From assembly GCA_964035545.1 (NCBI GenBank), contig OZ037769.1:2604001-2668000 (forward strand): a DNA stretch of 64,000 bases, written 5' to 3'. Below the pieces are notes generated by a model, which was not told where the DNA came from, did no database searches, and saw only the letters and a program-made list of their open reading frames with translations. The translations under genes and the position numbers were made by a program. The DNA comes from Bugula neritina. Taxonomy: Eukaryota > Animalia > Bryozoa. Positions 7 to 63,474 of this stretch are shown here, in pieces (within the stretch, counting starts at the first letter, position 1; the number at the start of each line of letters is the position of its first letter).

Positions 7-3000
7 ATGCTGTCCATGACATTGGCAACAGCAATGTAACTCAGGTAAAAGATTCTTTAAATGAATAAAGATTACAAATAAAGTTTATTATCAATAGCCA
101 AATGAAATCTATTCTGATTACAATTTTTTTATATATTATATAATCTAATATATAATTTAGTTAATTGGGTTCTAAATAAATTCTTATTTACATAAAATAT
201 ATGAATATTTTACTTGTCAGCTCATTTTGTGTGTCCACTAAAACAGCTATACTAGGTTAGTGTTTTCATTTTCAGAGCTGTATATTGGGTTGTTCATGTT
301 TGTGTTTATTTATAGAATGGAGCAGATGAGCTTTCCTATAGCAGTTCTGTGCCAGTTGGAGCCGGTCTTTCAAGTGTTGGCGCTTTTGGAAGACATAATT
401 CCGTGTCCAACCCAGACGAAGTACTCGAGAATATACGTGCCCTTCGCAGGAATCTATTGGTGAGTATATCACTACGACCCCCCTGCTTTGTATTATGCGA
501 AGGGTATTTTTCATTCAATGCATGAAGGCAGTGTCAATCGAATCAAATCACAATCATAGGTTAATTCGGGTTTTCATTTGATGTAATCTGTACAAGTATC
601 CCATGCGTATTCATTCAATGCATTGAGACGTAGTGCAATAATAATAATCGAATAAAACCTGCGTCTGTGTCTATAGGCTGAGGAAAAGCACATGTCTAGA
701 CGAAATACTCAGACTTCCGAGAATGAAAGAGAGGCTCAGTCTCTTGTTGCATCAGACAACTCTGTGGCTCAGAGCAAGATTTCTCTCAGAAGAGAGGATA
801 ACCCCTCGTTACCTGCCTTGCAGTAAGAACTACTACTTCTTTGACACATAAGGCAGTTAATATACTGATTTCGTGGCAATATTTTAGTAAAATGTGTGAT
901 TGGGACATTGGCTACAGTTTTCTATGCTTTCTCTCGGTGCATGTAAACAGCTGAGCTGTGGTATACTTCCAATTGCCTGTATTACGTCGTTACGTATTGC
1001 ATATTTTGTCAAGTGTCGAGTTTTGCTGTTGCAGTGAAACTCCAAAGGCAGCTGCCGGGTATTTCCTCAGTTTCCCGTTCTCCCAGCACGAGGTATGCTT
1101 GCATAACATGCTGTTTGTTTAATTTCTCTTTCACTCTGGTTAATGCTTACACATCTATATTCTTACATGTGACTAACAGTTAATAGTGACCATATAATTA
1201 CTTTTATTTTCATTGTTGATTGATTCTTCTATAGATAGTAGTAGTTACTAAAATAGAGGCGATTTAATTACCAAACATTAGTTTTACTAACTAGTTGTAA
1301 CAGATTTGTGTTCGTATCTCAGTCTGTGTTATAGCTGATCATGTAGCAGCCGTTTTACTAACTAACTTAGTAATTAATTGTAACAGACAGATTTTTGTTT
1401 GTTTTTATAGCTGCATTTTTTATTTGATTCTGCAGATAGCAAATCGGGACTCCTTAGTGTCGGATAGCGGACTGATGGTGAACAAGGAGACAGCTATCGA
1501 CTTCAGTGATATAGTACAGCTGGAGAGACAGGTACGGGGAGACGATCTACACACACTAGACGACTACATGCAGCTGGCTGTAGAGATCTCTGTGGAAGAC
1601 ACTGTCAGAGTGCACCAGGTCACAGGATCTCTAGAGGTGAACAGTAGTCAACACTTCCCGCTCAGTCACACCGTCAGCTCAGGAGACATGGTAGACAACT
1701 CCTGTCAGTGTCACCTCACGCAGCGACTCAACCTCGCTGACGCCGAGCTGCCGGAGGTAAAACTGTTTGATGTTTTTTAGCAGTTTTAAACGTCTTTCAT
1801 AATGTAAAGGCTAGTAACTGAAAATCCTTGCGTAATGTTTTAGAGAACCAGTCTGGGAGATATTCAGGCGTATCGACGACGTTTCTCTCTCAGCTCTCCT
1901 CTCCCCGACTCCAACAGTTCTGCCAGTCTGCCGGGAGTCTTGGATAAGTTTGCTTCCAACTTCACTCGCAGATTGGCTAACCAAATGCATCTGCATTCTA
2001 GTCTAATAGGTATGTAATTGTCTTATCTCTGTCTTGCGTGTCTAATAGAAGGTGTGGTTGTCTTCTCCCTGTTCTATGTGCTTAGTGGATTTGTAGTTGC
2101 CTTCTTTCTGTTGTGTTATACCCAGGATAATAGTAATTACCATCAGTTGAATGTAAAACTTATTAGCTGTGATTTCTTTGTTTTAACAACTTCTTTGTTT
2201 CAACAACATATATGATACATGCAACATCTTGAAGTGATTAAAATTCATTTGTTTAGTCACAAAATGTATTCGAATGGCCACTTCGTATTAGAATGAGAGA
2301 ATTATTTTTACAAAATACTGCAATTATAAGAAAGTGATGTTATAGGCTCCCTCCACCTGCATATTATCAGTGCACTGAACAAACACCTGTCGAGAGTGTC
2401 AACTGTGGACAATGTTGACAAGACAGATCGGCTGATTGTGTACTGGATGAGGTCTGTTAGTTTCCTCACCAATGTGAACAAGATCTTACTTGACCTGATA
2501 ACAAACTGCATCAACACGTACAAGTCTCATCGGCGCATGTGAGTGACCTGCATTTCTACCCTTCTTCTGTTTCACAACACTTTGCTATCTCCTGCAAGAA
2601 GAGACTTTGCCAGAAGAGATAGTAAAGTGTTGATCAAGCACGCACACGATATGTCAGCTAGGGTTGGAAGCCAGTTGGTATCTTTTATAAAAAAGCTAGA
2701 AATATTTGCTATGACCTAGAGTTTACACGTCATTACTTAATACTTAGTAGTATTCGTTCTTTCCTATTAATCTATCAGCCAATCAGATAGCATTTCCTGT
2801 CAGATTCAGCGTGTGGCAGAATTTCATAAAATGGGTTTATGAAACGTACCAGGCTGTTACCTTGCCAACTAGTTCAATCCCTAATATTTGTCAAATACAC
2901 TTCAAACTTGCAATATTTGATGTATCATGTGACAATTTATTTTTTATTGATTGATATTTTATATAAAAGCAACCACATCTGAAAGGGTTTGACCGTCTAG

Positions 3001-3198: not shown

Positions 3199-4564
3199 AT
3201 GTGAATTTCTAGTTCTCAGTGAGTTTTCCTGTAGACTATTTATAAATATACAAGCAGTGGTTACTATAAAACTAACAGGTTTTGTTGCATCAAAAACAAC
3301 ACAATACTGTGAGTTATCTTCACTTGTGGATCAGTGTTAAATATCGTAGCATCTTCTCTCAATCAATATTAATCAATACTCAATAGTAGACAATGTGTTT
3401 AGTTTGATTTTATTACATTGAAATATTAGCCCAAGTTGCTACATCTGCTACATGTTAGTTGAGTTGGGTTTAGCTTGTAATCTCCCGAAAGAGATTGTTG
3501 GATCAAAGTCTATTTGTCAATTTTACAATAATGTTGTCGGATCTACATGGTGTGATTCAATGTAGCTTCTTTAAATCTGTGTCAGCACAAACCAAGTCCG
3601 GCTGATTATTGAATGGAAACTGCAGCGTAATCTTTAATAGAATTTAATTGATTACATTACAATATGCCTTACAACAAAGTTTTATACAAAAACTGGCTCA
3701 CTCAACATGTAAAACTAATTGTAAATAAAAAACAAGTTCTGTAATAAATAAATGGAATTTGTGTTGAACAGATGCACTACTGAATATTAATTATTATATT
3801 TAGTGATAAAAATATTTTAAACTATCTGCCAATATTTCATCATGAATAGACATTTATTTTTTCTCCGAATTTGGAAATTTAGCCATCAGCTTTATTGAAC
3901 TGCTTCACCTTGCATGATGCAACACTATTATTGAAAAATCAAAAAATTCTAGTCCAACAACTGCAGTCTTTGTCTTGTGTTATTACTTAACACAGCTTTG
4001 TTTCCAATCTAGCAGACTGCCCTTCCTTTCATATATAGGCACTCCTTTATTAGCTGAATGATGTTCATTTCTTTGTTAGTTTTATATCACTAAATAAGTA
4101 CTATTATATCATACTTAACCACTCCTGTTGCAGCTGCACAAGGTGCAGCTTATAACACCTTCTTTGTTCTAGCAGATGTGTTATATCATTCATAAGCTTT
4201 TTATTGCACAAAGCTACTCAATGCTGGCATCAAACTGTGATAAACTATTTCAACATCATATTGTCAATATTTATAATGAGTTCCGTTTTGAAATTTATTT
4301 TACAAGCTATAATGAATTATTGTGCCATACATAATGAGTGCATACATTTCATTTGTATCAATATGTTTTTTCATGGAAATAGGCATTTTTTAAATATTCA
4401 TCACATTTTCCTAGAAATCAGATTTCTATCATATGTGTCGAAATGTCACTAAACATTTTTCCCATTTCCAAGACCTTTTAGTTAGCCCCAGATTATTGTT
4501 TGAAATCATGATGAGGTTGATCATACGGAACACTATAAGGTCTATATCTACATTGATGCAGTTT

Positions 4565-4590
4565 AGCCCCGCCCCCTCTCTCTGATTGGG
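4565..4590 (+). promoter_or_regulatory. GC box plus inverted CCAAT box, candidate promoter of the EF-hand gene
   Basis: gccccgccccc followed by gattgg about 40-60 nt upstream of the predicted ATG at 4629, in otherwise AT-rich DNA. Confidence 0.4.
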
Positions 4591-4628
4591 CAGTTTAAAC
4601 ACTCCATGGCTTACATATATATTAGCAG

Positions 4629-7600
4629 ATGGATTTACAAAATGTGCTATTAAATGCAGAAGTTTTTATTTGCAAAAACTCCTCGCTTCAATTGCTCTGT
4701 GTTTTTTTTTGTGATTGTGGTTTCAACACTGACCTGGTATGGCCGCATGTGAACAGACGACTCCCTATGGCTATCAAATTAAAATGAGATCTAGTGCTGT
4801 GGTACAGTTTTAGTTAGATATGTTAGAACTTGGCTAAACTTGAATGAACTGCATATGCCATTGAGATTAGCTGAGATTTGTTCTGATAGTGATGATATTA
4901 CAATAAACATCTATATGTAATGGACTTGAACTATTGAGTAATATGTGCGAAGGTTTTATAATGTGACTGACAACATGTAAACAGTTGGCTAATAGTAAAT
5001 AGTATTTCTGTAAACAAGATGCTTTTGACATGTCATAAAAAGGTCAATTGCCTTACATTACTTTATTAAAGTGTAGTAATCAGAAATTTCAATATAACCC
5101 AAGTTCTTCAATTTTCTAATGAGTTTTAGTTCGAGTTCTAATTAAAAATCTCATGAGAACACAACTTCTTTTACTACATTTCTCATGTAAAACACAGGCT
5201 TTTCCCTTATTACCTTTATTGTTCCTATACTATTAGTTAGTAAGCTTGAGAGTGCAGCTGTACTAGGATTTATCTGCCCTTCTTGACACTCTACTATATA
5301 TGCAGTACTCTCTCCCTATCTCACTAAGCTGTAGGGGGGGGGGGGGGGGGGGCCAAAACCTCAATCTGTGACACAATAGAATGTCAGGTCTAACTCACGG
5401 TTCCGTTAAATTCGGCCATTTTGTCCATATACACGCATGCATAAGCCATAAAACATGGGTCTAATGGGGATCTATGGGATTTCATGAGAAATGGAACTGC
5501 GAGATATGGAGAAAGCATTGTGTATAGAAATTACTTTAGTTTGACTTTTGTTCATTTAAGCTCTCTCTAATGGAGCAGGTACAACCCCACCCCTCCCCTA
5601 ATTTATACTTTCATTTTGTTTAGTTTTTACGTTATCTTTCATAGTTCAGGTGGTGTGACAAAAGAATTACTGTTTCATTCTGAATAATGTTCAGGTAATT
5701 TTATAAACTTAATTTACATTTTTAGAATTCGAGAAAACATACAAACTACAGTTCTAGATTTGACAGAAAGAGCAGTTCAAATTTTACCCGGGCTTCAACT
5801 GGAAGTGTAAGTGAGGATTTCTGGCTTTATTCAGACTATCTTTATTACTAAATAAAAAAACTCACTTTTGTTTTTCAATTCTCCATCTCTGTGAGAACCC
5901 CAGGTGGTAGGAGTGTATCTATTGTGGTACAGGATCCCTTTTTGACACCACCAGCAGTCCTTACCGCGGGACTCCAACCCATGACCCGACACTTACTTGG
6001 CCACTTTTCTAACCTTTTACTAAAATATAATTTTATAAGAAAAGACACAAATTTAAAATGTGTCCTTTCTCAACTTGGAGTATAACGTGTAACATGTATA
6101 CCCTAATACACTGATGGTATAATAATTATAGTACTTGCTGATGGTATAGTTATTATGATTTGATGTTACAGAGTTACTTTAGTTGGAGGAACTCAACAGC
6201 ACACAATTCTGATGTTAAGGTATTATTTTGTCCTTTAAACAATGTTTTATCACCAATAAGCAAGTTAAAAAACGATATTTTTTATGTAAATAATATTGGA
6301 ATAGCTTGCTGTGTATTGTTTTGAGGTGCAAGGCCTCTTTTTAAAGAGAAATTATCTGAATAACAGTGCTAGAGGCATTGTCAGGAAAATTAGTTTATGG
6401 TGGTTTTGGTACTTTGGAAAAACATACTTTTAAACAATTCTCCATTGATGTATACAGTAAATAGTTTAGGTGCAGCATGTAAGAGGTAGTTCCGGCGGCA
6501 TAAGAGGTTTTTTACTTGCATAAATAACCTAAGCAAACATCTACACTCCTACTACTCAACTTCATAGATAAAATATCAATGAAGTTGAGTAGTAGGAGTG
6601 GAGATGTTTGCCTAGATTATTTGTTGTTAGATAAAATATCAAACAACAAAGCAAATTACCCACTAATTACAGTAGATAAAAAAAGAGAAAAACAATAAAA
6701 AACAGAATAAACAAAATATAAATAGAATTGGAAATGTAAGCAATGCAAAATATTGTACTGTTGGAAGGATATTGAGTTTTTTTTAGTAATGTAATAAGTT
6801 ATTAAAATGTTAATTTTGAGTTTGTGTAAAGAGATAAAAATGCTTTATCATAGTTATTTGAGACTTCCACTTGTGATAGTTATTTTTTGTTCATTTTGTG
6901 TACTTTTCTACTTGCATGGCGCCAAAATTGTGTTTCCATAAGACATACCTTAAACTAATATTAGTGTAGAAAATAAGCCAGACCCAAACAAATGTTTTCC
7001 GGCACTTACAGTATACTGTTTACGTACCTATTTTCTTTAATTAAATTGTCTCAGATTTTTCTCTCTCATTGTTAAAACTTTATTTGACTAGAAATAACAG
7101 CTTTTTGTGTAGCCGTAATAGTTGTCTCAAATATATAATACATTGTCTGGTAGGTTTTCTAATAGTAAAATAAAATTGCAATAGATGATTGACTAGCATG
7201 TTTCTTGTTGACCTGGTTAGATTGAGATAGATGCAGTAGTGGAGAATTTGGGGAAAACCTGTTTTCTAGATATATTTCAACCCACACCCCAAACAAAAAT
7301 TCTCAGATAATTACTTTACTATAAAGATGTCTCACTATTACACCAGATCTTGGTTGTAGTTAGAGTAATAAATAGTATCAATACAAAAGTGACTGAAGAA
7401 CTTTCAGCACAACTTTATCATAGCAATCATGTCTGCCCAGCTACTCGTACTGTAGTGTCAATGACTTTTCTGGTCTTCTTTAGAAAACTTCAAACGAGAC
7501 TAAAATTGCTGGAAAGTTGGAGTTCTTAGATAAGTTGTACAAGACGCTGACTCACGATGAACAGCATCTGCTGCTGGCGGTAATGCACTCTGTTCTGTTT

Positions 7601-9536
7601 TTCCCTATATTATTATTATCACAAACTCAAGCTGCTAGCATTTTGCAAGGCTCGTGACTCCTAGGTGACCCCTAGAGTCACTTGGGGACGGAGCAATATT
7701 CCGAAGGTCCATTAGTCCGAAGGTCCATTAGTCCGAAGGTCCATTAGTCCGAAGGTCCATTAGTCCGAAAATTAGTAGACACATGATAGTAAAGAGCATC
7801 CTCACTGAGAATATCATTGATTTCACTCACAATCTAGTTTAAGTTCTTGTTATGTTAATGCTATGTGGATGGCATGCGTGTTGCCTACTTGTGATTGTTT
7901 AGCCTGAGATTACACTATGACCAGAAAACAGCTGCCTCAATTAGGGCTGCATCATTATGGCTGCTTTATAAAAAAAGTACACAGCAAGCTATTCACTACC
8001 CTGTTAGCTAGCAAGCCTGTAATTAGTATGTACACATCAGTATCTTCTCATCTCTAAGTGTTCACTGAAGCATGAAGTGCTGCGCAATGATGATAACTTA
8101 GGAAAAAAATTTACTAGCATTTAATTAGTATTACTTATTTTACAGCTAGTGTAAAAATGACAGGGGACTGCAATTCTATTCCAGCTACAGTCAGTCACCT
8201 TATATAGGCCATAAATGTTGACTATTTATAAACTGAGAAACTAAAGTAAAAACATGAAACCAGTAAAATTAAAGCCAAGCAAACATTTTGTGTCTACCGT
8301 ACTGTATTTATGACAAGCTTGGTAAAAATTTACCGGGCACCTCATAACTTATAAAAAAAAGGTTGCATTTGAAGTTAGCGTAAAAAAAAATGGTTTGTTT
8401 TAGAATTTTGCTATTGAATGTAATAGTAAATCTCTGGCTTGGTAGTTATTTATTTGGTATCGCATTCAAACTCTTTAATTATCTGTAAGCTGCTAAGCTG
8501 CATTATTATATTAATTAAATTATGCATATATCTATTTCAATTAAAAATATCTCTTTGTAATTAAAAATTTCTTTAATTAGGGATATCTGTAAAAATGCAT
8601 TGAAGACTAAAAATTATAAACATCCTGGACACTACTCTAAAATCAAATAAACAAAGCTGCACACCATAATATACCAAACCAAACAAATCCACAAGATACT
8701 CCGATAAGGGCAACCTTCTAGCTGTAACTGCCTGGCTGGGGCCACACTATTGGTATATAAGAATTCAGTCCAGCCAAATAAAACCTCACCTATAGAGGTG
8801 CTATAGAATCGAAATTTAAAAACCATGTTGTAGATCTTTCTGTTCCTCAAAGCAACTTTTTTGAAATTTTCAATAGCTTTTATAAATTTTCTATAAAATA
8901 TAAGTGATTTATACACTACAAATATGATTTTTTCCTAAGTTATCATCATTGGGCAGCACTTCATGCTTCAGTGAACACGTAGAGATGAAAAGATACTGAT
9001 GCGCACATACTAATTACAGGCTTGCTAGCTAACAGGCTAGTGAATAGCTTGCTGTGTACTTTGTTTATAAAGCAGCCATAATGGAATGTTGATAGATGAT
9101 GCAGCCCTAATTGAGGCAGCTGTTTTCTGGTCATAGTGTAATCTCAGGCTAAACAATCACAAGTAGGCAACACGCATGCCACCCACATAGCAATAACATA
9201 ACAAGAACTTAAACTAGATTGTGAGTGAAATCAATGATATCCTCAGTGAGGATGCTCTTTACTATCATGTGTCTACTAATTTTCGGACTAATGGACCTTC
9301 GGACTAATGGACCTTCGGACTAATGGGCCTTCGGACTAATGGGCCTTCGGACTAATGGGCCTTCGGAATATTGACTAGTCACCGAGTCACTTGAGCTCTC
9401 TGGCTTGAGTTTACACACCTTTTAAATATGCTTTAGTAGAAACATAAGTTTCTAGTATTGCGAAGGTGTGGGCCATGGTACTCTGTTCTGTGCTGATGAG
9501 GGGACAAACCCCGAAACAGCCGCTGTCCACAGATTG

Positions 9537-9606
<70 letters not shown>

Positions 9607-12600
9607 AAACTCACATAGCACTGCAAACTGAAAAAATCAAAATTCATCATGATTTTCAAATAGCTATTTCTCTTATTGCTAACTGTCAAATATTTCATTC
9701 AACATTATAAAAGTGATTTCATGTATTAGAAATTTATATTACAACAACTAGTTTGTATATGTGTTGAAACTCAACATCCTGGTGATTTTGTTGACAAAAT
9801 TCTGAAAAAATTAAAACAATCATAGTTCATTTCCTTAAAACAAATTGTATTGCTAAATGTCTGTACTTAGTTATATGACTTCTATATACTCTAAATCAGT
9901 GTATGTGTAATATAATACAACAGTGATCTTTTTGCATATCTTACTTGCAAATATTATGGGCTAAACCTAAATCTGTACTGAAAAGTGGAAATTGGAATCC
10001 AAAGTTCCAAGTAATATTTCACTTGTTGTCAATTATTCATTGGAAAACTCAATACATTCCAGTATTAGGTTATCACAGTGTTTAATGTTAGCTAATCAAA
10101 TATCAAAGTTGACTCGCAGTGATTCCTGGTAAAGTAGCAAATCATATAATTTCTTTCTCATTTTTCTTATTAAGCAACCCAGATCTTTCCACTTAAGTAA
10201 TATAACACACTTTCAGTGCACTATAACTAGGGATTATTATGACCCCCCCCCCATAGCGTAGATCACATGTTTATGCTGCTATGGTGGTGATGGGTCATCC
10301 ATTTCTGCTTCACCAAATCTTTTCTTCGGGATTAGAGCGTTGATGAATAATATAATAGAAAAGGTCTTCCATAGCATGATTTAAAAGCTGGAGGACTAAT
10401 AAATCAATTTAATATAATTGGTCACCTTTCACCGCTGCGCTCCTTCGAGAGTGGCGGGAAATCCACGCCCCCCCCCCCCCCCATCTCACATATCTCTAAA
10501 GAGAACATTGTTATAGACATCTCATTATATTCTATAAATATATTTGATATAATGATACTTTCATAAAAATTCCTCTCTTTAGAGATAGATATGTAAGATA
10601 GATGGGTGTCGAATGATCAAAGTAACTTTATTAAAGCATTTTTATGGACATATATTATATAAATCTATTTAATATAATGATACGTTCATAACAATTGCTC
10701 TCTTTAGAGATATGTAAGATGGAAGGGTGTCGATTGATTAAAGTATCTTGAGTTATATGATACCCTGCATACGATACAACATATTATGATATTAAAGCTG
10801 ATGTAAGGACACTCGTAAATCTATTTAGGTGCAGTGGTGGAGAAATTTAATAGCCCTGCTCTTGAGGAATTTTAGTTTGGGGAGCGTGTTGAAATTCCCA
10901 TGAGAACATGACTACATTTGCTACATTTCTAATCTAGAACACAGGCTTTTCTCAAGTTCTCTGTTACTGCACCTACATGGCGTAATGCAGTAAATGCTGT
11001 CTGTTTGTTTACTGGCTATATATTGAGTTTTATTAATTGTTCATCTCCAGAGATGATTGCATAAAAATAGGAGTTTTTGGCTAATAAAACCAAGAAGTCA
11101 TGTTTTCACATTATGTCTATTAATATTACTCCAGTTTTTTCCTCGTCCAATAATTTTCCTCCAACAATTTAGCAGACAGATGTCTAGGTTTGTAATTAAT
11201 GTTCCAGGTGGTTTTCTATTTCCAACTTTCTGAAACTTTCCTGGTTCCTATATATTTTATCAACTCTGCTTACTATTTATTAATTAAAGTTTTTTATGCA
11301 TAGATTCGAGCTTAACATATAATAAGATTCTAAGCTATATATTATAGTATATATTATAGTATATATTCTATTATATATTATAGTATATATTCTATTATAT
11401 ATTATGTACTATATATTATATTATATTATATATTCTATTATATATTATACTATATATTATATTTTATTATATATTATGCTACATATTATATTATATATTT
11501 AATCCTCGAAGTAAAGGTATGATGTTGTAGCTGTTTGCCGTTGCCAATGGGCATGCTCAGGAATCGGACGTCAGTGAGAAGGAGCTCCACTTGATCTTCT
11601 CCATCACCACAGGATATAACTTTACGTTAGCTCAGTGCAGGAAGTTCATAGCAGAGGTCGACGTGGACGACGATATGAGTCTCGGCTTGTATGACTTCTT
11701 GGCTGTGCTCTATCTTACCGAGTCTTACCTAATAGCCATCGCAGGTAATTCCTACACTGCTTCTGCAGGTAGTATTTATATTGCTGGCAGACTGTATACT
11801 TGGTATACTCTGTACTATGTACTCTGTGTACTCAGTGTACTCTTTACTATATACTCTGTATATTCTGTAATATGTACTGTATACTCTCTACAGTCTACTG
11901 TATACTATATACTCTACATACTATATACTATATACTCTACATACTATATACTATATTATACTCTACATACCATATACTATATACTCTACATACTATATAC
12001 TCTACTACATACTCTATATACTCTACATACTATATACTCTACATACTATATACTCTGTACTATGTACTGTAGGCGGCTTTCTAGACTCCAAACTCGCCCA
12101 GTTATCTCTCTCCTTCACCTCCACTCACGCCCTTCTCTTCACTGCCCTCTCTCAACTCTGTCTACTCCACCATCTCAAACTTCCTGAGGTGAGCTCAACG
12201 TCATCTCATATAAAACAGCCTCGTAGCACAATTAAACAAAGTATTAGAGGCAATCTGAAATGTTCTCTGTCCAATTTCAGCATAGAAATATCTTCCATCA
12301 CCTGACGAGTCCTCCTCCATTTCACGGCAGCGCTGCTGCCTTTGAACAGACGTTTGTCAGACCCAAACTCTTCTCTTTCTCTCTTCTGGGTCAACATAAT
12401 TCATACTTCGACTTGATTGGCTGGAAACTGATGAACTCCACTTTAGTGAGATTACCTCCCCTTGCCAGGTGTGTATACCTGCTTTCCACCCCTTACCAGG
12501 TGTGTATAAATGCTCTCCACCCCTTATCACCCTTTACCAGGTGTGTATACCTGCTCTCCACCCCTTGCTATTTGTGTATAACTACTTTCCACCCTTTGTC

Positions 12601-20589: not shown

Positions 20590-23500
20590 ATGCCATCTCC
20601 TCCACACTATTCACAGGTAATTGATTTAATCAAGATGTTCAATGTCAGTTCTAAAAGTCACTATTTTAAGAGTCACTCCATTTAAGAGCTGTAGCGAAAA
20701 AATTGAAATAGCCCAAGTTCTTTAATTTAACAAATGTTTAGTAAGGTATGCTTTGACATATAAAATGTGAATTCTAATTGGTTTAATTTATGGTTCATAT
20801 TTTGAAACCTTTTTTTTCAGTAAAAGCTCCAAACGCCAAAATTTAAGGGCTCCTTTCATTATTTTCCTATCTTTTTGAAGGAATATGTGATATATTTCTT
20901 TAATCAATTCATTATCTCACTTCTATGTTTTTTTCAGTTGGTTATTACTGATATATTTGCCATAGCTTGAGTAAATAGTTCCAGAATTGAGGAGATAACT
21001 CCTAAAGTAACAAATTTTACTTACCTATCTAATTTTTCTAATTATCATAATAAACATCTACCAATACTTTGTAGAACAACTTTATATAATATTCATGATT
21101 TCATAACATAATTGTTTGGTATTCAGTATTCACAGGTATTATCGCAGTTGTAATACAATCAATACCTCACTTGTGTATATGTAAATAATTTCACTGGTGA
21201 GAAAATATTATAGTAGGATGTTGGAGAAATTTTGCTGCATTATAATTCATACACCATTAACAAGTAGAAAGTAGTTGCAGTATTAAAACAAAATTAATTA
21301 TTTTAATAATTGCAATTTATAAATCTTGTTTTCAGTGAATCAATGCATAAACTCTCTGAGTTGTTTAAACTTGAAAAAAGTGTTTCAATTATTCATTTCA
21401 TAGTTTTAAATGTTTTAGCCCTTACCGCTGAATTAAATGCTGTGTGGAATAAAGCCAATTTTGCTTAGGCCGACTAGAGGCCAATGGCTACTAAATCTTT
21501 GTAAATCAACACCGTGCAGTTTGGCGAAGACTTAGTCATCTTTTGTCATGTTTTAGCTCTCATTTATTGCTTCTTCAAACGGACCAGTGAAGTGTGAGCA
21601 TGCTTCAACTAGATCAAACGGAGTGCTACACTCACACCACCTCGATATAGCACCGGATGAAGCGTTCGAGATGGTTGACGAAGTATTAGCTGCCAATTTC
21701 CCTGATGATCATGTTGTCCCTTTGAGTCTCCCGAATGGCGTCGTTAAGGAAGAGGCCCACGGGGCGGCCTCTTACACCACCCCGTGTTCAGTTTCTCCTC
21801 TTCATGTCTACACAAAGCCTAGTGACCTTATCAATTCGATTTCGTCTGAGGAGGAAGAGAACTTCCCTTTAGTGACCGCCCACTACGCCTCCGATTCTAA
21901 CCAACAGTCCGGTACGTTCCTTTCAAGCCAGTCTTTGAAATAGAAATTATATATCAACTTAATAATGTTCACATATTTGATTTTTTGTTTGAAGCCACAA
22001 ATCTTTGTTTAAGATCTTAAACCAGTAAAATTTGCACTTTTCTTTGATTAAACTTTGAATGACAAAAAGAAAAGCAATTGCCACATTGCTTTTTGCTTTG
22101 AAGTGAAGTGAACTTGCTCAAACAACCTGGTTGCTTTGGTTACTATACTCTCACTCAGTAAAATAATGGAGTAACTCTTTTTACTGTATGTATGATGTTT
22201 ACCCAGTTATATGATTACACCTATTTTATTTTATTGATATGATTATTAGTGAATGAATCACTATGATAATATACAGAGCATGTAATTGCTGTCATATAAT
22301 ACATAAAACGGTAAATTAGTATGTTTGATGCTGACACATCATCAAAAAATGTTGTGGGCTGTAAATACTCCAACATGTTTGATATTCTGGAGTGATTCAA
22401 ATAATTTATTAGCTTAAAGCAAATCACTAGTTTGATGACTCATATATGGTTACACCTGAATACAGATAGCGAAGACGAAGACACGGTATTATTGCCCGCA
22501 ACAATAGATTCCGACGATAACGAAATACCTGTCAACTCTACGGACCACAACAGTTTCTGGTTGTACAAGAAGCAGCAGAAAGGCCCTAAACCCCGTCACC
22601 ACTACAAGCTCAACGCATCTCATCCTACGCACGACCCTCACTCCCCCATCACGTTTAAGGACCCGGTATTTGATAAATCTCAAAAGTTGGATGTGCGTCA
22701 CTTTGGCAAAGCGAGACTAGGTGAAGCAAATGACGTCACACCTAATCCGGAGAAACTGTGTCGTTTGGGAAAAGATATTGAAAGGATACAGAGGGAGTTG
22801 TCAGATCTTACTGATGAAATGAGGAAAGAGAAAATGAAACTATCTTCAAGGTGTGGTAGTTGTCTTACCATCGTTATAACTAGTACAGTGTTGATACAAA
22901 TATTGTAATGAGCCAACAGTTTTATGGTCCAACTACATAACTCTGTAATATAATTTAGTTAGTAATATAATTTTGTAATATAATTTGATCAGTAATATGA
23001 CAACTAGCCAACTAAAAATAATATTGAAAATTATATCCTTACAACTTGCAAATTTGAATGCTTATGCAAAAAAATTATTGCTTTGTCATCATTTGCTTAA
23101 GAATTTTGTTATATCATATGATTAAAGTAATGTGACTATATTTAAGCTAGTCTAGAACATTCTAATTCTCTTGATTGAATGCTTTATTAACTTGATATAG
23201 AAGATTAATAATGTTATCAATGCTTCACTGCTTGGCATCATGTTTCATCATCTGATTACTTGGGTTTTCCCCACACAGTCGCTACTATAATGAATAGCAC
23301 GTGGCTTTGAATGAGTTGGAATTCTACTCATTGCATAAGCTTATGTCAACTTATAGTCCCTTTCAAATACAATCCATCGTAATAGTTACAATAGAATTTA
23401 ATCTAAAGATACTGTTGATACTGCCTTGGAATTTCTCAAAATTAGCTCCCAAAAGTAGTATATGTACTATTTGTGGTAATTTTATTAAGTTTTAATTTAG

Positions 23501-33354: not shown

Positions 33355-36300
33355 ATGTCAGATGACACCAGCTCTACCAGCCAGTCACACAATGTAGGAG
33401 ATGAGTCAACTGCTGCCAATATTGAAGGCAGCGGACGGGTTTCTCGTGAAGCTCGTAGACTTCAAGTACAAGGCAATGTTGACGCTCGTGAGAACTTAGA
33501 AATATTACAAGAAATCCTCCCTGAGCACTATCTACAAAGTCACAGTGGTGGTTGGTCTGGTGACAGTGGTGGTGTTAGTTACTACTATCACTCAGAGCCT
33601 GGCACAAGCTCCAACCAACCATCTGGATCTCAGTTAGGTCAAGTGAAACAGGAGGAAAGTGAAGGTGACGCTGAGCATCCTACGACGCTGTTACTGCAGT
33701 CTTCAGATAGTTCAGCTGATGGCTTCCAGTCTGATGGTAATAAATAAACTATTGCTATTTCCAATATAGTTATATAAGTATTAGGTATGACTTAGTATCT
33801 GTATTATTTAGTATTACTATTAGTATTACTATTAGCATTAGGGAGAGATCTAACAGTAACTATAAGTATAATATTAATAATAAGGATTTAGGTGCAGTAG
33901 TTGGAAAAATTTAATAGCCATGTTCTTTCATTTTCTTGATAATTTTGTTTTGGCAGGAGGGAGGGTAGAATTTCTCTGGAAAATATAACTCTTTTTGCTA
34001 TATTTCTAATCTAGAACAAAGGCTTTTCTCTAATCCTGCCCCTACCTCTCCAAATAAGTTATCTGTCCTTTGAACCTGGTTTATTGTGTTTTCATTAAGT
34101 TGGGAGAAAAAAGTAGTTTGCTCTAAAGTCTGAAGATTGCCATCACAAGGAGGAATAACATCTAATTTGTATTGTGGTTAACCATTAACCAAACTCGTGT
34201 CTTGAGTTACCTTTTCAACAATGTTTACCTGCAGTCTCTTATCTTCATTGTGGTCTCCTTATGTTTGAATTTTTTATCTATCGGCTAGACTGGTGGTCAA
34301 CATAATAAAAATTAAGCAAAATAGGGGTGTCAGACTTATGTCCAAACCAGAATGCCAACTTAGAAGTTATAGACTTGGGCTAAACAAGGGTCTGCATCTC
34401 TTGACTCAGCAAACAGTTGGGGCCCCTGGATAAACTGGGTTTTTGTGATTTTTGTTGATACTTGTATAACTTTAGAGCTGCTTAGTTGCTGGTGCATATA
34501 GTATATTGTCTTAGGACTTAGAGTTTCATTCATTACCAGCTTTCATCATATCTTGGTTTAGAAATCTTTGCTTCAACAATGCCATGTTGATGGTATTTTC
34601 TGATAATGTGTTGTTTCATCTGAAATATCTTAGTGTAGTATATCTTAAATCTACTACTGTGAAAACCAAGCAAGATATTAGTGTAAGCTGTCAAGATACA
34701 TCTTAAGGGTGGGGTTGCCATTTGAATTAGTAATTACTTTGACAAATGATCCTTGATTAAGACACTTGAGACCTTAGGGGGAGACGGATGTATTAAACTG
34801 TCTATAGCTCATATACTACTTGTCTATATCTATTACTTGTCTATGTATACTACTTGTCTATGCATACTACATGTTTTCTATAAAAGATGATAACAAATCT
34901 TCTATAAAATATTGCAGAGGACAACCAACCCCTTATTCCTTCCACAGTAGAAATAGACGAGTCCAACAAACCTTTGAATTATAAAGAAAATACTGCCGAA
35001 GCGTTCAACTCTTTTTGGAAGTACAAGAAGTTTCCGAAAGGACCAAAAGTAAAGCAGAATTTTGAGTTGAAAGTAGTGACTCCTCAAGATCCGCACCAAC
35101 AGATAGTCTTCACGGATCCTGTGTTTGATAAATCTCAAGAAAATACAGTGAGGCACTTTGGCAAGGCTAGAATAGGAGAAGGAAATGACATCACACCAAA
35201 CCCCGAGAAGCTGTCGCAACTCGGTAAGCAGATGGAGAGCATCGGCCAGAGAATGTCGTCTCTGGGAGATTCTACGCAAGACAGGAAGGAGAAAATGAAA
35301 CTTTCTTCCCGGTTAGTTATCCCGTTGTGTGTGTGGAGTTATCCCAGTGTGTGTGGAGTTATCCCAGTGTGTGTGTGGAGTTATCCCGTTGTGTGTGGAG
35401 TTATCCCGTTGTGTGTGGAGTTATCCCAGTGTGTGTGGAGTTATCCCGGTATGTGGAAGTAGGTGCAGTAATGGAAAAATTGAAAAAAGCCTGTATGTTA
35501 GGTTAAAAATATGACGAAAGCAGTTACGTTCTCATGAAAATTTCTACCTGTGCTCCAAACCAAAATTTAACTAAAAATTTAAAGAATTTAGGCTATCTCA
35601 ATTTCTCCACTAAAGCTCCGAAATGTGTGCCTGCACTCCTAAATGTGTGCCTGCGAATGTTCTCAGTCTATTCCCATCAACATGCAGTTGTAAAGAAATT
35701 TTGATAGTCCAAGCTCTTAAGTTTTCATAAAACAATCTGGTTTGGGGGGAAACATGACACCCAGTATAAATAAAAATTCTCATATGTTTTTGTAGTCTTC
35801 ATAATACCCATCAGTTGCCGGAAAAGCTTAGGTCTGCTGTTTTTATCAAGCTACACTGATTTGTATATCAGTTCTATATATAATCAGAGATATATAACAT
35901 AATGTGGAAGTGCAGACATGCTGAAGATCCTGCCCTGTTCAAGTCATAACAAGTTAATGTACATTAGATTTATTTACCATCAACCATAATGGGAAATTCA
36001 TATCACCTGTTGTCAGTTGTCTACCAGCCATTCAGCTGTCAGTCACCACTAGAAAATATCCCAGGGTTCCTATGTGGCATCTCTGTTCCCATATTCCCTG
36101 GTCCAAAGTCTGAAACTACCTGCTATGTTCAGCTCTTTGCTGGGAAAGACATGAAAATAGGCACTCTCTGGCATGTTTATATTTCCAACATCTGTCTCTA
36201 TGAGTTATAAACACACCGATTTTTAGCATTGTGAAGTAAATGCATTTCTGAGCAATGGTTGAAATGGTTGCGGTGGTTTTATTCGATTGACACTGTCCCA

Positions 36301-43695: not shown

Positions 43696-46534
43696 ATGAT
43701 GTCGGGCAGCTATGCCGAGGTGGATTTACATATACTAGAAGAGATATGTGCTGGTCAGTACATAGATTCAACATTAGATGTGAAATATCCAGTGTTGGGT
43801 GTCACCGGGTCGAGTGAGTCAGCACCTGACATCATAGAGTCAGCGTTGAGGTTCGCTGAGGGGACATCTGATGCGGATGTGGCTTTACCAACTGTGCTAG
43901 GCAGCAATTTACAAGAGAGTGAAGGTATACATTTATTATATTCATGAGAAGATAACTGCTGAAGCCTACTTTCCCTAATGTTAGAGTGAGAGCTAGTAGA
44001 TTAGATAGTCAAACTAGAATAAGTCAGTTTAATATATAGTAGGACTAATATGTTATCATTGTAATTTAAAACTTAGGCAGTAGTTTGCTATATTATCAGT
44101 TAAGAGATAATATGACCTGACGGCAGCAACCCTTGGCTGCAGCACTAGTACTACATTTCTATGCTATGTTATTACTTAATATACTCTGTATAACTGCTAG
44201 TCATGATTTCTGTTTTATTTCTTTTAAGAAATATTATTATTCTATGTTACTTTTTATATTTGTTATGTAACTACTAGTTTCAGTTTTAGTTTTGTTTTGC
44301 CAATAGGCTATTCAGATGAATCCCGTGGGAATGATGAAGGTGAAACAAGTATTTTACCAACGACAATAGACGACTCCAAACTTTTAGAGGAAAGCAGTGT
44401 ATTTCAGAGTTTCTGGGTCTATAAAAGGTTTCCGAGGGGACCTAAAAGTCGGTCACTAGAGCTTACTGTCAAGACACCCACCAATCCTCATCGACCGATA
44501 AAGTTTGTAGATCCCGTATTCAGTGAAACCATCAACCGTAGACAGTCTATTGTCTCATCCGGTGCCATGAGACTCGGCGAAGGCAATGATATTTCCCCGA
44601 GTCCTGGAAAAATGCTGAGGCTTCAAAAAGAAATCTTGGAAACAACAGGAAAACTTTCGACGAATAAATCTGGCTCGTCGGGTAAACGTGGAAAACTGTC
44701 ATCAAGGTAAAACTAATGAAAGTGAAATCAATAAAAAATATTTGTGCACAAATCTATAGCAGTAAATGTTTGTAATACATAAGTTTCTAGCTGAGTGTAT
44801 TTTTATATAAGTTGTACAACGATACTACTCTTGCATGATGACCGCAGCACAATTGGTTTGTTAATCAGTGCTTGGAACTTCTTTAATCAGTGGGTAAACA
44901 AAGTCCTCTGTCACAACTTCATAAACAAGAAAAATGTTTGTATTAATTTTTTATTAAAATTAGAACTACAATTTTTACCAAATGCAAGCTTTCTGCTTCA
45001 CATAATATTATAGTTGTTAACATGCTGGAATAGTTTTACATAAAATTATTATTTAAAGAAAAAGTGTCTATAATAAACATTTCAAATCCTCAAAGAGTAA
45101 AAATGATGATAGATTAGTTATTTTGTCTTGAAGGCTTGCATTTACCACAGCATAACTCAAATAACACATTATTGTTTATTATACATGTGCTATACTATAT
45201 CACGTATACTGTTTACTGTGCTCCTGGTTTGAAATATCTTATTTCTAGGCTGTCACGACTCAAAAGATCAGCCAATCATGAAGCTAATAAAATCATTTTT
45301 CACGGACTTGAAGAAGAAAAAGGTGTATATCAAATATTAGTATAAACTTCTCAGTCTACTGGGGTATTTCACTGACTTTATGCAGGTCTTTTTTAAAGAG
45401 TTGTCTTATCATTGTGACTTAGTTTCTAACTGATAAACTGAAGAGTATGGCATCAGCGCTATATGCTAAAGTCCTTATCTATAATATTTATATGAAGTAT
45501 GAGCTGCTGCAGCTTATCTTATTCTAACTGTTCAAATTAGATAAAAACAAAATATATAATTATTTGAAATATAAAATTTTTACATGACTCATGACTCACT
45601 TATACTATATATAAATGTTGATGCATAACATTGAATGTAGACTGCTAATACACTGCTACAAATATATAATATACATAATTGTCTTAAATAGATTGAGATT
45701 AAATTATATTCTATAGCTCGCTGTTTATTAAATTTCATAAAATTATTGTGCATTAATATATTCAAAAATTTTGTTTAATGAAAGTGGCCAGCTAAAGTTA
45801 AATATTACATAAGCTATATTTAATTATAAACTACCTCACTGTCTTGATTTGTAACTAAATAATCAATGAGCGCATACATAATGCTGCTTAAACTTATATA
45901 TAACAAACATAAAAACAATTACCAGATATTTAAACTGCTATCAACCATTCATATTATGTATGTGAGTGACTGTACTTGCTTATATAATAATAAAAGTAAT
46001 AATAATAATAACGATAATGAATAATTTACTTCAACTTGAAAAATTAAGATTTTATTAATTTTTCAACTTAGAAAAAAATAATATGCATTAAATAATGTTC
46101 AGTTATATGAATTATTGCTATTATATGAGTGCATACTTACTTTTACTGTTTTAACCAAATTTGCAACACCAATCAGTGCATTTGAATAGAAGTTATTTTC
46201 TCTCGAGTTTACATAAAATTAATTATAACTCCTAATTACATAATAAATGACATTATTGTAACCACTGTTGCCAATGGTTTCCGGCTTTTTTACTGCATAC
46301 ATTATGTTAACAATTTTGCATTTTACAGATCAGCTGAGTGGAATTGTTAATTCAATCAAAAAGGTTCTTAGAAACTTGAATCTTCCCACCAGTTGCAAAA
46401 CTTTCCACCAATTTTTCTGCCAGCACCTAAAACTGCACACAACTAAAGTAGCTGGGAGACGAGGTGCCTATGTTGATGAGATTCTAAGTATGGAACAAGA
46501 AGTCATACTATATAAGCAGTCTGAAGATGATTAA
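43696..46534 (+). CDS. CREBRF: CREBRF/REPTOR-like bZIP protein, paralogue 3 (most diverged, about 302 aa)
   Basis: Exons 43696-43924, 44307-44706, 45249-45322, 46329-46534; same phases; SFWVYKRFPRGPK, RLGEGNDISPSPGKM, GKRGKLSSRLSRLKRSANHEANKIIFHGLEEE, TKVAGRRGAYVDEIL. Frame open throughout. Confidence 0.85.
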
Positions 46535-61811: not shown

Positions 61812-62066
61812 AGGAAAAGAGCAATTTAATTATATAGATGTTGTTTTATTGTACTAATAATAGTTTCATGCCTCTTTGGCACTCCTCAGGCACAATATAT
61901 TGTGCCTGAGGAGTGCCAAAGAGGCATGAAACTATTATTAGTACAATAAAACAACATCTATATAATTAAATTGCTCTTTTCCTCAATAATATAATTGCTC
62001 ATTATTATACACATAATAATTTGAGCACTTTTTTATCCGCTGTTTTTAAAAATCTCACGATACAAT

Positions 62067-62104
<38 letters not shown>

Positions 62105-63474
62105 CAATTAAGAGACTCATTTCTTTATAAAATTATGAATTATTTCTCAATACTCAAGTTAATAATGTGTTGGGGATGGTTTGTAGCACACATTCGTTTT
62201 ACAGCCTGGATCGGGGCCATAAGCTCTGTGGTTATCATCAGCGTTGCTGGCATAGCTGTTATATCCATCATCCCTCTGATTAAGAAGTCCTTCTACAAGC
62301 AGGCTATACAGTTCCTAGTAGCCTTAGCAGTTGGCACATTGGTTGGGGACGCCTTACTACACCTCCTACCTCATGTAAGAATTTTAGTCTATGTATCATT
62401 TCCTTTCTCTTTGAGTTATTCACTGCAACAGATTTGTTTGCCTGCTTTTAAAAACCGTCTGATGAGTATAACATTGCTGCTGTATCTTGTTTAAGAAGTT
62501 TTCAAAGAAGACACAACTCTAAGCTATCACCTTGTAGCAGATTTCCTGTAATAGAAGTTTTCTCTTTGTTGCTAAGCAACAAAGAGGAAAGATACTGTGT
62601 TGCTAGGTAACGCAGTGTCTTACTCATTTCTAAGAACGAAAGAAATTTCAACTAAAGAATTTCGTTTACTTTGTTTACCAGAAAAAAAATTAATTTTTAC
62701 AGTAAAATTTTGCCCGGCCTGTAAGTTAGCTCAAGTTGGTTCCTTCCCTCCCCGTCTTATCACCAGCTGTTTGTTGCAGGCGTTGAGTGAGCACGAGGAG
62801 GTGGAGTCAGATCTGCGCTCCTCCAGTCACCACGTATGGAGGGCTAGTGTAGCCCTTCTCGGTATCTACATATTCTTCAATGCCGAGAGAGTCGTGGGAG
62901 CCATTACCAGTACAAAGCGTAGGAAGAAGGCCCTCGCTAAACACCAAGCAGTGAGTTTTGACTCTCAGTCTAACTCTAAAATGTAGCCTCAGGGAACGTA
63001 ACGTAATATTTCCACTTGTGAAATTATTATCAGTTTTTTAAACATATTTCATATGTCTTGTACTTTTTTGTAATTGTCTCAGTGACAGCATTGAAATAAC
63101 TGACTTTACAGTTCAAATAACTGACTTTACAGTTCAAATAACTGACTTTACAGTTCAAATAACTGACTTTACAGTTCAAATAACTGACTTTACAGTTCAA
63201 ATAACTGACTTTACAGTTCAAATAGCTGACTTTACAGTTCAAATAGCTGACTTTACAGTTCAAATAACTGACTTTACAATCCTTATAGTGTGATGTTGCT
63301 ACAAGTTGTCGTTTGTTATCACAGAGTGGTGTGTATTATGTAATGTTGAGTTGAAATGTTTCTCTTGACTGTTTTCACAGGATGGATCTGGTGAAAGTAC
63401 TAAAGATAAATCGGACATAGTCTCCTGTGGGTCTTGTGCAGAAGTTCCGTTTGTTAGTGGCCACAGTAGTAAAG
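57137..63474 (+). CDS. SLC39A10: LIV-1 subfamily ZIP zinc transporter (ZIP10/ZIP6/foi-like), 5' part; continues beyond window
   Basis: Exons 57137-57385 (signal peptide), 58021(or 58012)-58155 (RLKR), 60417-60636 (CLS..LSPSLLFQL..PC, PAL-like motif), 62205-62374 (AWIGAISSVVIISVAG..QFLVALAVGTLVGDALLHLLPH), 62780-62950 (VWRASVALLGIYIFFNAE), 63381-63474. A further exon near 63843-63907 is likely but its frame is unresolved. Exact orthologue (ZIP10 vs ZIP6) not determinable. Confidence 0.9.
58141..58415 (+). repeat. 34-bp minisatellite duplicating exon end and splice donor
   Basis: agtgacttacacaag|gtatacctaatgtgtgtga, about 7 copies; the first copy overlaps the real donor at 58155. Confidence 0.95.
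61802..61993. repeat. Perfect 192-bp palindrome next to (TA)n, each arm holding a hammerhead-like motif
   Basis: Centre at 61897/61898, 96-bp arms, no spacer. Confidence 0.95.
61898..61948 (+). ncRNA. Type I hammerhead-like motif (mirror copy on minus strand, 61847-61897)
   Basis: Stem I tattgtgc/gtacaata; core CTGAGGA(61906-12); stem II GTGCC-aaaga-GGCAT; GAAA(61928-31); stem III ACTA-t-TATT has a C-T mismatch next to the core, so it is probably impaired. Confidence 0.65.
63095..63279 (+). repeat. 21-bp minisatellite, about 9 copies
   Basis: aaataactgactttacagttc units. Confidence 0.96.

Follow-up and report, generated by a model that had tools for sequence, protein, structure and literature searches.

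The metazoan retrozymes that lack long terminal repeats (non-LTR retrozymes; PMC7229834, PMC5680766) are non-coding elements with a GC content below 50%, present in many dispersed copies, whose predicted monomer is strongly paired and whose canonical metazoan hammerhead ribozyme has a helix I of 6 bp, a helix II of 4 bp and a short helix III, the type I hammerhead being carried in tandem repeats of about 150–450 bp. The same traits are seen in an element represented once in the stretch of Bugula neritina DNA analysed here (64,000 nucleotides of contig OZ037769.1, positions 2,604,001 to 2,668,000, hereafter the window, from whose first letter all positions are counted), with a repeat period of 272 bp, arrays of up to five units and a GC content of 46%. 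With a probability of roughly 85%, we consider the hammerhead found near position 9500 of the window to be the 3′ end of one 5′-truncated monomer of a young, non-coding, 272-nt metazoan non-LTR retrozyme. The kind of element is already known (PMC7229834, PMC5680766, 10.64898/2026.07.22.740005), and a link between retrozymes and Penelope-like elements (PLEs) has been proposed before (10.64898/2026.07.22.740005).

The present family departs from the retrozymes of PMC7229834 and PMC5680766 in its strict association with (TA)n microsatellites, its 3′ end being fixed at 12 nt past the cleavage site, a trait on which no statement was found in those two papers; it is also known from DNA alone. The minimal hammerheads of the pseudo-LTRs (pLTRs) of PLEs (PMC4209133) resemble that of the window in their short, near-palindromic helix III, which is able to pair between two copies, whereas their longer helix II, the unpaired base at its foot and their 4-bp helix I are features of hammerheads 2–4 of this genome and not of the one in the window. 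A first-pass annotation, made from the letters of the window, had counted the latter among the minimal PLE-type forms; it is instead of the canonical metazoan type I (6/4/short) of PMC4209133, and it is the PLEs of this genome that carry the minimal ones. In amniotes, conserved intronic hammerheads are likewise of type I and lie on the sense strand of an intron, as the window copy appears to do, but they are single-copy and ultraconserved, whereas the window one is a fresh transposon copy. The motif as such is ordinary for an invertebrate genome.

The complete type I hammerhead was read directly from the forward strand at 9487–9533, or 9481–9538 with its distal pairing, and its assignment is based on this reading, on fold energy and on a descriptor. 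Helix I consists of six base pairs between UCUGUG (9487–9492) and CACAGA (9528–9533); the core comprises CUGAUGA (9493–9499), GAAA (9513–9516) and the triplet GUC (9525–9527); helix II pairs GGGG (9500–9503) with CCCC (9509–9512) over four base pairs and is closed by the loop ACAAA; helix III pairs ACAG (9516–9519) with CUGU (9523–9526), again over four base pairs including A15.1–U16.1, and is closed by the loop CCG. Cleavage is predicted between C9527 and C9528. Outside a 2 × 2-nt internal loop (GU 9485–9486 against UU 9534–9535) CUC (9481–9483) pairs with GAG (9536–9538), and U9484 stands opposite G9539 in this distal part. The layout is that of type I, in which, around the core CUGANGA/GAAA/N-U-H, loops cap helices II and III and helix I is left open, and every part that had been named in the first-pass annotation (the complete core, the 6-bp stem I and the ctc/gag pairing beyond an internal loop) can be located within 9481–9538. 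A strict descriptor, defined as the core together with at least 4 bp in helix I, 3 bp in helix II and 3 bp in helix III, matched the 64-kb window once, at this site, and matched none of 300 dinucleotide-preserving shuffles, while a looser, helix-free pattern had two matches in the window against 0.19 expected. The hammerhead is real, and it is predicted to be self-cleaving.

Copies of the element are numerous in the same genome (216 Mb in 321 contigs were searched). The 141 bases from 9400 to 9540 gave 821 BLAST candidates at 99–100% identity, and a 35-nt core gave 481 matches with at most two mismatches, its reversed control giving none. The copies are dispersed at hundreds of sites on at least nine large contigs; several matches are spaced 272 bp apart, and one locus (L012) holds 5.1 head-to-tail units that are 99% identical, with (TA)n on both sides. 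A BLAST search of this very segment for copies and tandem arrays had been suggested as a check, and the arrays turned up as arrays of the 272-bp unit. No open reading frame (ORF) of 60 or more amino acids was found in or between the units. The arrays run head to tail without terminal repeats, and the primer-binding site and polypurine tract were not specifically searched for. Folded as a circle, the unit is predicted to pair 71% of its bases and to reach –103.5 kcal/mol (z = –8.3 relative to mononucleotide shuffles). Recurrent variants among the sampled copies, a sample picked by motif, either lie in a loop or give G–U pairs. A test comparing substitutions in the core with those in the rest of the unit was discarded since the loci had been picked by their core match, which leaves the core intact by ascertainment. 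An origin as a tRNA-derived short interspersed nuclear element was also considered and rejected, as ARAGORN found no tRNA-like part in the unit. Elsewhere, positions 2100–2420 of locus L009 (reverse strand) hold an old, decayed relative of the unit beside TA/TG repeats, with 76% identity over 88 nt and a dead core, CTGACAA, so that the family or a forerunner of it has long been present in the genome.

The copy in the window is a 5′-truncated monomer covering unit positions 73–272 plus 12 nt (212 of 272 nt, plus 12), and it lies on the forward strand in two parts. The 5′ part (7619–7684) corresponds to unit positions 73–138 and is identical to the array unit at 66 of 66 positions, as seen both by BLAST against the unit of L012 and by direct comparison; the 3′ part (9384–9539) corresponds to positions 129–272 (9384–9527) followed by the 12 nt CACAGATTGAGG (9528–9539). 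Two differences from the array unit were found in the 3′ part, namely C200G, which is private to this copy, and T266C in loop 3, which is a subfamily variant present in 17 of 75 sampled copies. The feature had previously been delimited as 9478–9603, which proves too narrow at its 5′ side, the beginning of the copy lying beyond a nested 1.7-kb transposon with terminal inverted repeats (TIRs). The proposed junction to a (TA)n tract, on the other hand, stands: (TA)32 occupies 9540–9603, starting 12 bases past the cleavage site, and represents both the 3′ flank and the insertion target, the same type of junction being present in 39 of 48 sampled insertions.

These 48 insertions, from 41 loci, were mapped to the unit numbered from the cleavage site. 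Thirty-nine of them stop exactly at CACAGATTGAGG, 12 nt past the cleavage site, with four or more TA repeats behind it; if copies with a slightly shorter 3′ end are counted too, 44 of the 48 run into a (TA)n tract of at least five repeats. Every sampled insertion extends 9–12 nt beyond the cleavage site, and none (0/48) stops at the site itself. At the 5′ junction (TA)n is present as well in 31 cases, and the 5′ ends are scattered across unit positions 1–246, so that 27 insertions fall short of one unit, 10 measure about 1.0–1.3 units and 11 are longer, with a maximum of five. Superimposed on this scatter are a cluster of 5′ ends at positions 1–16 (13/48, binomial p ~3e-6, with four of these 13 truly lying further upstream) and a second one at positions 220–246 (13/48, p ~6e-4). 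Insertions of the former cluster comprise close to a whole number of units, which is compatible with TA microhomology acting at the second junction.

Target-primed reverse transcription characteristically leaves a constant 3′ end and 5′ ends that are truncated to varying degrees, and the pattern seen here points to copying from RNA into (TA)n microsatellites. Since no insertion stops at the cleavage site, the template would have had an intact junction, being a circle closed by re-ligation or a multimer that had escaped cleavage; a cleaved linear monomer cannot have served, given the 9–12 nt past the site in all insertions. The TATTAT that comes after GAGG in the unit is able to pair with a nicked TA repeat, and such pairing would set the start point of copying. 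The first-pass annotation had proposed a solo, ribozyme-bearing retroelement end targeting (TA)n. This can be retained with regard to the solo state, the ribozyme and the target (44/48 insertions), but the feature is not the end of a pLTR: it belongs to a separate 272-nt element that forms arrays and has neither an ORF nor BLAST similarity to the PLE loci fetched. Several hundred near-identical and very young copies allow the rules of insertion to be read directly, i.e., (TA)n as the target, the constant 3′ end past the cleavage site, the 5′ truncation, the classes of whole units and the chimeras with PLEs described below, and this set of copies could help to decide which form of RNA is the template and which enzyme copies it.

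The following course of events may be proposed. Arrays would be transcribed and their hammerheads would cut the transcript into 272-nt monomers that could be circularised; RNA with an intact cleavage junction, whether a circle or an uncleaved multimer, would then be reverse-transcribed at a nicked (TA)n tract, with priming by pairing between the TA repeat and the UAUUAU located after GAGG in this RNA. Premature stops of reverse transcription would produce 5′-truncated copies such as that of the window, and reverse transcription continuing around a circle or along a multimer would produce arrays. The enzyme would most likely be the reverse transcriptase (RT)/GIY-YIG protein of PLEs resembling the Hydra clade, whose own 3′ ends also run into (TA)n. 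The window copy would have been inserted, in sense orientation, in a TA tract 39 nt after a putative 5′ splice site and later split by the TIR transposon. Taken jointly, a re-ligated circle copied by rolling-circle reverse transcription, a TA-primed and template-switching enzyme of Hydra-clade PLEs and a window copy that works as a ribozyme in pre-mRNA form a tentative scenario, in which the junctions of this family would record the way animal retrozymes move, and it is rather doubtful that all of its parts hold together.

PLEs adjoin some of the retrozyme copies, and the 3′ region of one of their families, A, has at least 345 candidates in the genome. The 3′ ends of families A, B and C read ...CAGTACCAAA(TA)n, ...CTACATTA(TA)n and ...CCTCAATAA(TA)n, with CCAAA, CATTA and AATAA respectively as the last bases. 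Frames of family A contain YRDD, a CNCKQPSNC stretch (the CxCx5C linker) and VIYQ...YIG. Genome-wide, 942 candidate matches to the PLE protein were obtained, with stop-free frames of up to 740 amino acids and further families at 46–52% identity. Pfam gave no match on the PLE frames, and a genome search with its GIY-YIG model, which found only one unrelated gene, is uninformative for these PLEs. A word search with the PLE protein returned about 4,100 homologues of roughly 700 amino acids, one of them from the coral Oculina patagonica, and the nearest Atlas clusters carried HTH_animal, GIY-YIG and RVT_1.

The Hydra clade of PLEs is characterised by a CxCx5C linker, a length below 3 kb, readily detected canonical hammerheads and, in nearly every family, insertion into (TA)n (PMC8557442, section 11). 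All four traits appear in the PLEs of this genome, which may be assigned to the clade by these motifs. The candidate mobilisers also agree with the described members (PMC8557442) in the C-terminal position of GIY-YIG, in their short single ORFs (up to about 740 amino acids), in the placement of the hammerheads in terminal regions and in the occurrence of inverted, 5′-truncated partners. The 272-nt element, unlike them, has no coding capacity, and no sequence in common with these PLEs was detected in it. Each of the families A, B and C has a hammerhead of its own, with a helix I of 4–8 bp and a helix II of 5–6 bp, and often, in family A, an unpaired base at the foot of helix II. When these three and the retrozyme hammerhead were compared by a structure-aware parse (MAFFT aligned the core and left the 3′ strands out of register), only the catalytic core proved common to the four families, all helices differing and yet pairing; homology between the families is not established. 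Inverted, head-to-head pairs of 5′-truncated PLEs were observed at L051 (2936–3697 on the reverse strand with 3745–5208 on the forward strand) and at L004 (about 1890–2010). Inverted, 5′-truncated pairs are a complex form of insertion typical of PLEs. Upstream of a decayed PLE copy at L048 lies a 667-amino-acid open frame (33–2036, forward strand) for which Pfam gave no match.

Direct contact between the two kinds of element is seen in two chimeras. At L006 (1700–1760, reverse strand) the 3′ sequence of a family A PLE is fused to retrozyme position 79 with 1 nt of microhomology, and at L001 (reverse strand, about 1100–1140 in reverse-complement numbering) the 3′ sequence of a family C PLE is fused to position 58 with 5 nt of microhomology, in both cases with no TA repeats between the partners. 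The retrozyme part is internally truncated in both. We read these chimeras as probable template switches within a single reverse-transcription event, which would mean that retrozyme RNA and PLE RNA had been present in one reaction. The PLEs of the same genome probably mobilise the retrozyme. With regard to linked RT/GIY-YIG ORFs, for which a search had been suggested in the first-pass annotation, PLEs adjoin some copies and are fused to two; the units themselves and the intervals between them hold no ORF.

A number of observations weigh against the interpretation given so far. The hammerhead covariance models of Rfam, which had been recommended as a check, gave no match at their gathering thresholds, the best scores on 9470–9542 being 15 bits for RAGATH-1-hammerhead (gathering score 56.3) and 12.9 bits for Hammerhead_3 (gathering score 48.5), and on 9380–9620 nothing was obtained other than spurious low-complexity matches to the TA tract; published searches for such animal hammerheads have relied on descriptors and not on covariance models (PMC4209133, PMC7229834). 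The copies within the family are 98–100% identical and no covariation is seen within it, and the conservation of the core among them is unusable as evidence of selection, the loci having been chosen by their hammerhead; the same choice makes copies without the 3′ part invisible in the junction sample. Transcription, cleavage and circles of the retrozyme are all inferred. In the ensemble predicted for the window transcript, helix III is present about 1% of the time. The model of the host gene is likewise a prediction, its EF-hand match lying under the Pfam cut-off. With regard to mobilisation, BLAST of the retrozyme unit against the fetched PLE loci found no similarity, and in none of the three PLE families examined could the sequence, the hammerhead or the 3′ end of the retrozyme be recognised; the link to PLEs, and to any one family as the mobiliser, is suggested by two chimeras, which are few.

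An alternative origin of the window copy, as the solo pLTR of an autonomous PLE whose coding part was lost or truncated, would be in keeping with the abundance in this genome of PLEs that carry terminal hammerheads and also end in (TA)n, and with the PLE sequence lying directly upstream of the unit at two loci. Those two junctions, however, fall at differing internal positions of both partners, which resembles chimeras and not a fixed structure, and the 272-nt unit has head-to-tail arrays of its own without an ORF, has no BLAST similarity to the fetched PLE loci and differs in every helix of its hammerhead from families A, B and C. We regard a solo pLTR as unlikely and a retrozyme monomer as the better description of the copy.

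The position of the copy raises another alternative, for which the surrounding gene has to be described. An upstream exon with an open frame ending ...LEFLDKLYKTLTHDEQHLLLA is predicted at 7484–7579 on the forward strand, with a 5′ splice site GTAATG at 7580, and an EF-hand-like downstream exon (…FIAEVDVDDDMSLGLYDFLAV…) is predicted at 11531–11744 on the same strand, preceded by an AG acceptor, followed by GTAAT and in phase with the upstream exon. The two exons were searched individually: Pfam gave no match on 7484–7579, and 11531–11744 matched EF-hand_7 weakly (E = 0.0018, 19 bits, under the 30-bit cut-off). The first-pass annotation had placed the ribozyme on the sense strand of an intron of an EF-hand gene; the orientation is supported by both predicted exons, which lie on the forward strand, but the gene model is itself putative and its EF-hand identity falls short of the Pfam cut-off, so that the ribozyme may be said to lie, by all appearances, in sense orientation within an intron of an EF-hand-like gene. 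The putative donor and the 5′ junction of the copy are 39 nt apart.

Cutting of the host pre-mRNA by the window ribozyme after C9527 is plausible, although as a lone copy it may cut slowly. By nearest-neighbour prediction the minimum-energy fold of the isolated hammerhead stretch (–18.7 kcal/mol) is not the catalytic one (–16.3 kcal/mol); helix III has a predicted energy of –0.5 kcal/mol as a hairpin against –14 kcal/mol as a two-copy duplex, and for two hammerheads a dimer of –40.1 kcal/mol is predicted against 2 × –17.3 kcal/mol as monomers. Energy models of this type leave out loop–loop contacts. A weak predicted helix III together with a favoured dimer would make the activity of the lone window copy weak, and short helices III have been argued to mean weak activity of a lone hammerhead (PMC4209133); a coral monomeric retrozyme repeat and, more slowly, a mussel repeat, on the other hand, self-cleave efficiently in vitro, at about 0.8 and about 0.1 per min respectively (PMC7229834). 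The chance of appreciable cleavage by the window copy may be put at about one half.

A ribozyme domesticated to regulate the EF-hand-like gene by cutting its pre-mRNA, as has been proposed for the intronic hammerheads of amniotes, would be compatible with a transposon origin. The sense orientation close to the putative 5′ splice site speaks for it, as do a ribozyme part left intact despite the disruption of the copy by the TIR transposon and the in vitro cleavage of the coral monomeric repeat and, more slowly, of the mussel one (PMC7229834). With one private base compared with hundreds of copies, however, the window copy is young and has had no time for selection, nothing indicates conservation at this locus, and for a lone copy the prediction is of a weak helix III; in frogs, moreover, such elements are depleted from introns (10.64898/2026.07.22.740005). 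Domestication appears improbable. The window copy is a natural test case for a sense-strand intronic ribozyme.

Very improbable, in turn, is spread at the level of DNA, in which the unit would be a minisatellite or satellite that unequal exchange or rolling-circle DNA had multiplied without any RNA stage, the hammerhead being incidental. Such a process could account for tandem arrays of 99% identical units, and the microsatellite flanks would be able to promote recombination, but it does not agree with copies at hundreds of dispersed sites on at least nine large contigs, with a 3′ end that is fixed while the 5′ ends vary and most copies are shorter than one unit, or with chimeras containing 3′ parts of PLE transcripts. 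Finally, a hammerhead-like motif arisen by chance, for which only the missing Rfam match at curated thresholds could be adduced, is refuted by the counts (0/300 shuffles with a descriptor match, 481 genomic cores against 0 in the control) and by four element families that have the catalytic core in common and helices that differ but pair.

The retrozyme copy of the window is interrupted at 7685–9383 by a non-autonomous, TIR/foldback-like DNA transposon of 1,699 bp that resembles the Mutator-like or foldback type. Its inverted arms are about 420 bp long and 96% identical and contain a 16-bp subrepeat, TTCGGACTAATGGGCC. The transposon is bounded by a 10-bp duplication, GAGTCACTTG, at 7675–7684 and 9384–9393, and the duplicated bases are retrozyme sequence (unit positions 129–138); their presence on both sides indicates that the transposon arrived later, inside an existing retrozyme copy, which it split while leaving the ribozyme itself intact. 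At least 199 candidate places in the genome hold an end of this transposon, frequently with two ends in inverted orientation at a spacing of about 1.6 kb.

On its 5′ side the copy is flanked by a degenerate TA-rich sequence (…CCCTATATTATTATTAT) at 7602–7618, probably a remnant of the target microsatellite. This sequence separates the copy from a 17-nt patch on the forward strand, ATGCACTCTGTTCTGTT, at 7585–7601, directly after the putative 5′ splice site, which agrees with unit positions ~221–237, flanking the hammerhead on its 5′ side, in 15 of 17 bases, 12 of them consecutive. The patch could be an aborted or older insertion, or could have resulted from a template jump. Comparable small patches of the element are present upstream of the 5′ junctions at L004, L027, L059 and L071.

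Further along the window, three paralogous long exons occur on the forward strand at 22432–22908, 34974–35462 and 44297–44710, about 10–12 kb apart, with the common motif FW.YKK..KGPK ... DPVFDKSQ ... RHFGKARLGE.ND.TPNPEKL and no significant Pfam match; they look like a tandem gene family. Positions 62021–62494, also on the forward strand, contain an exon of a ZIP zinc transporter (Pfam Zip, E = 4e-12).

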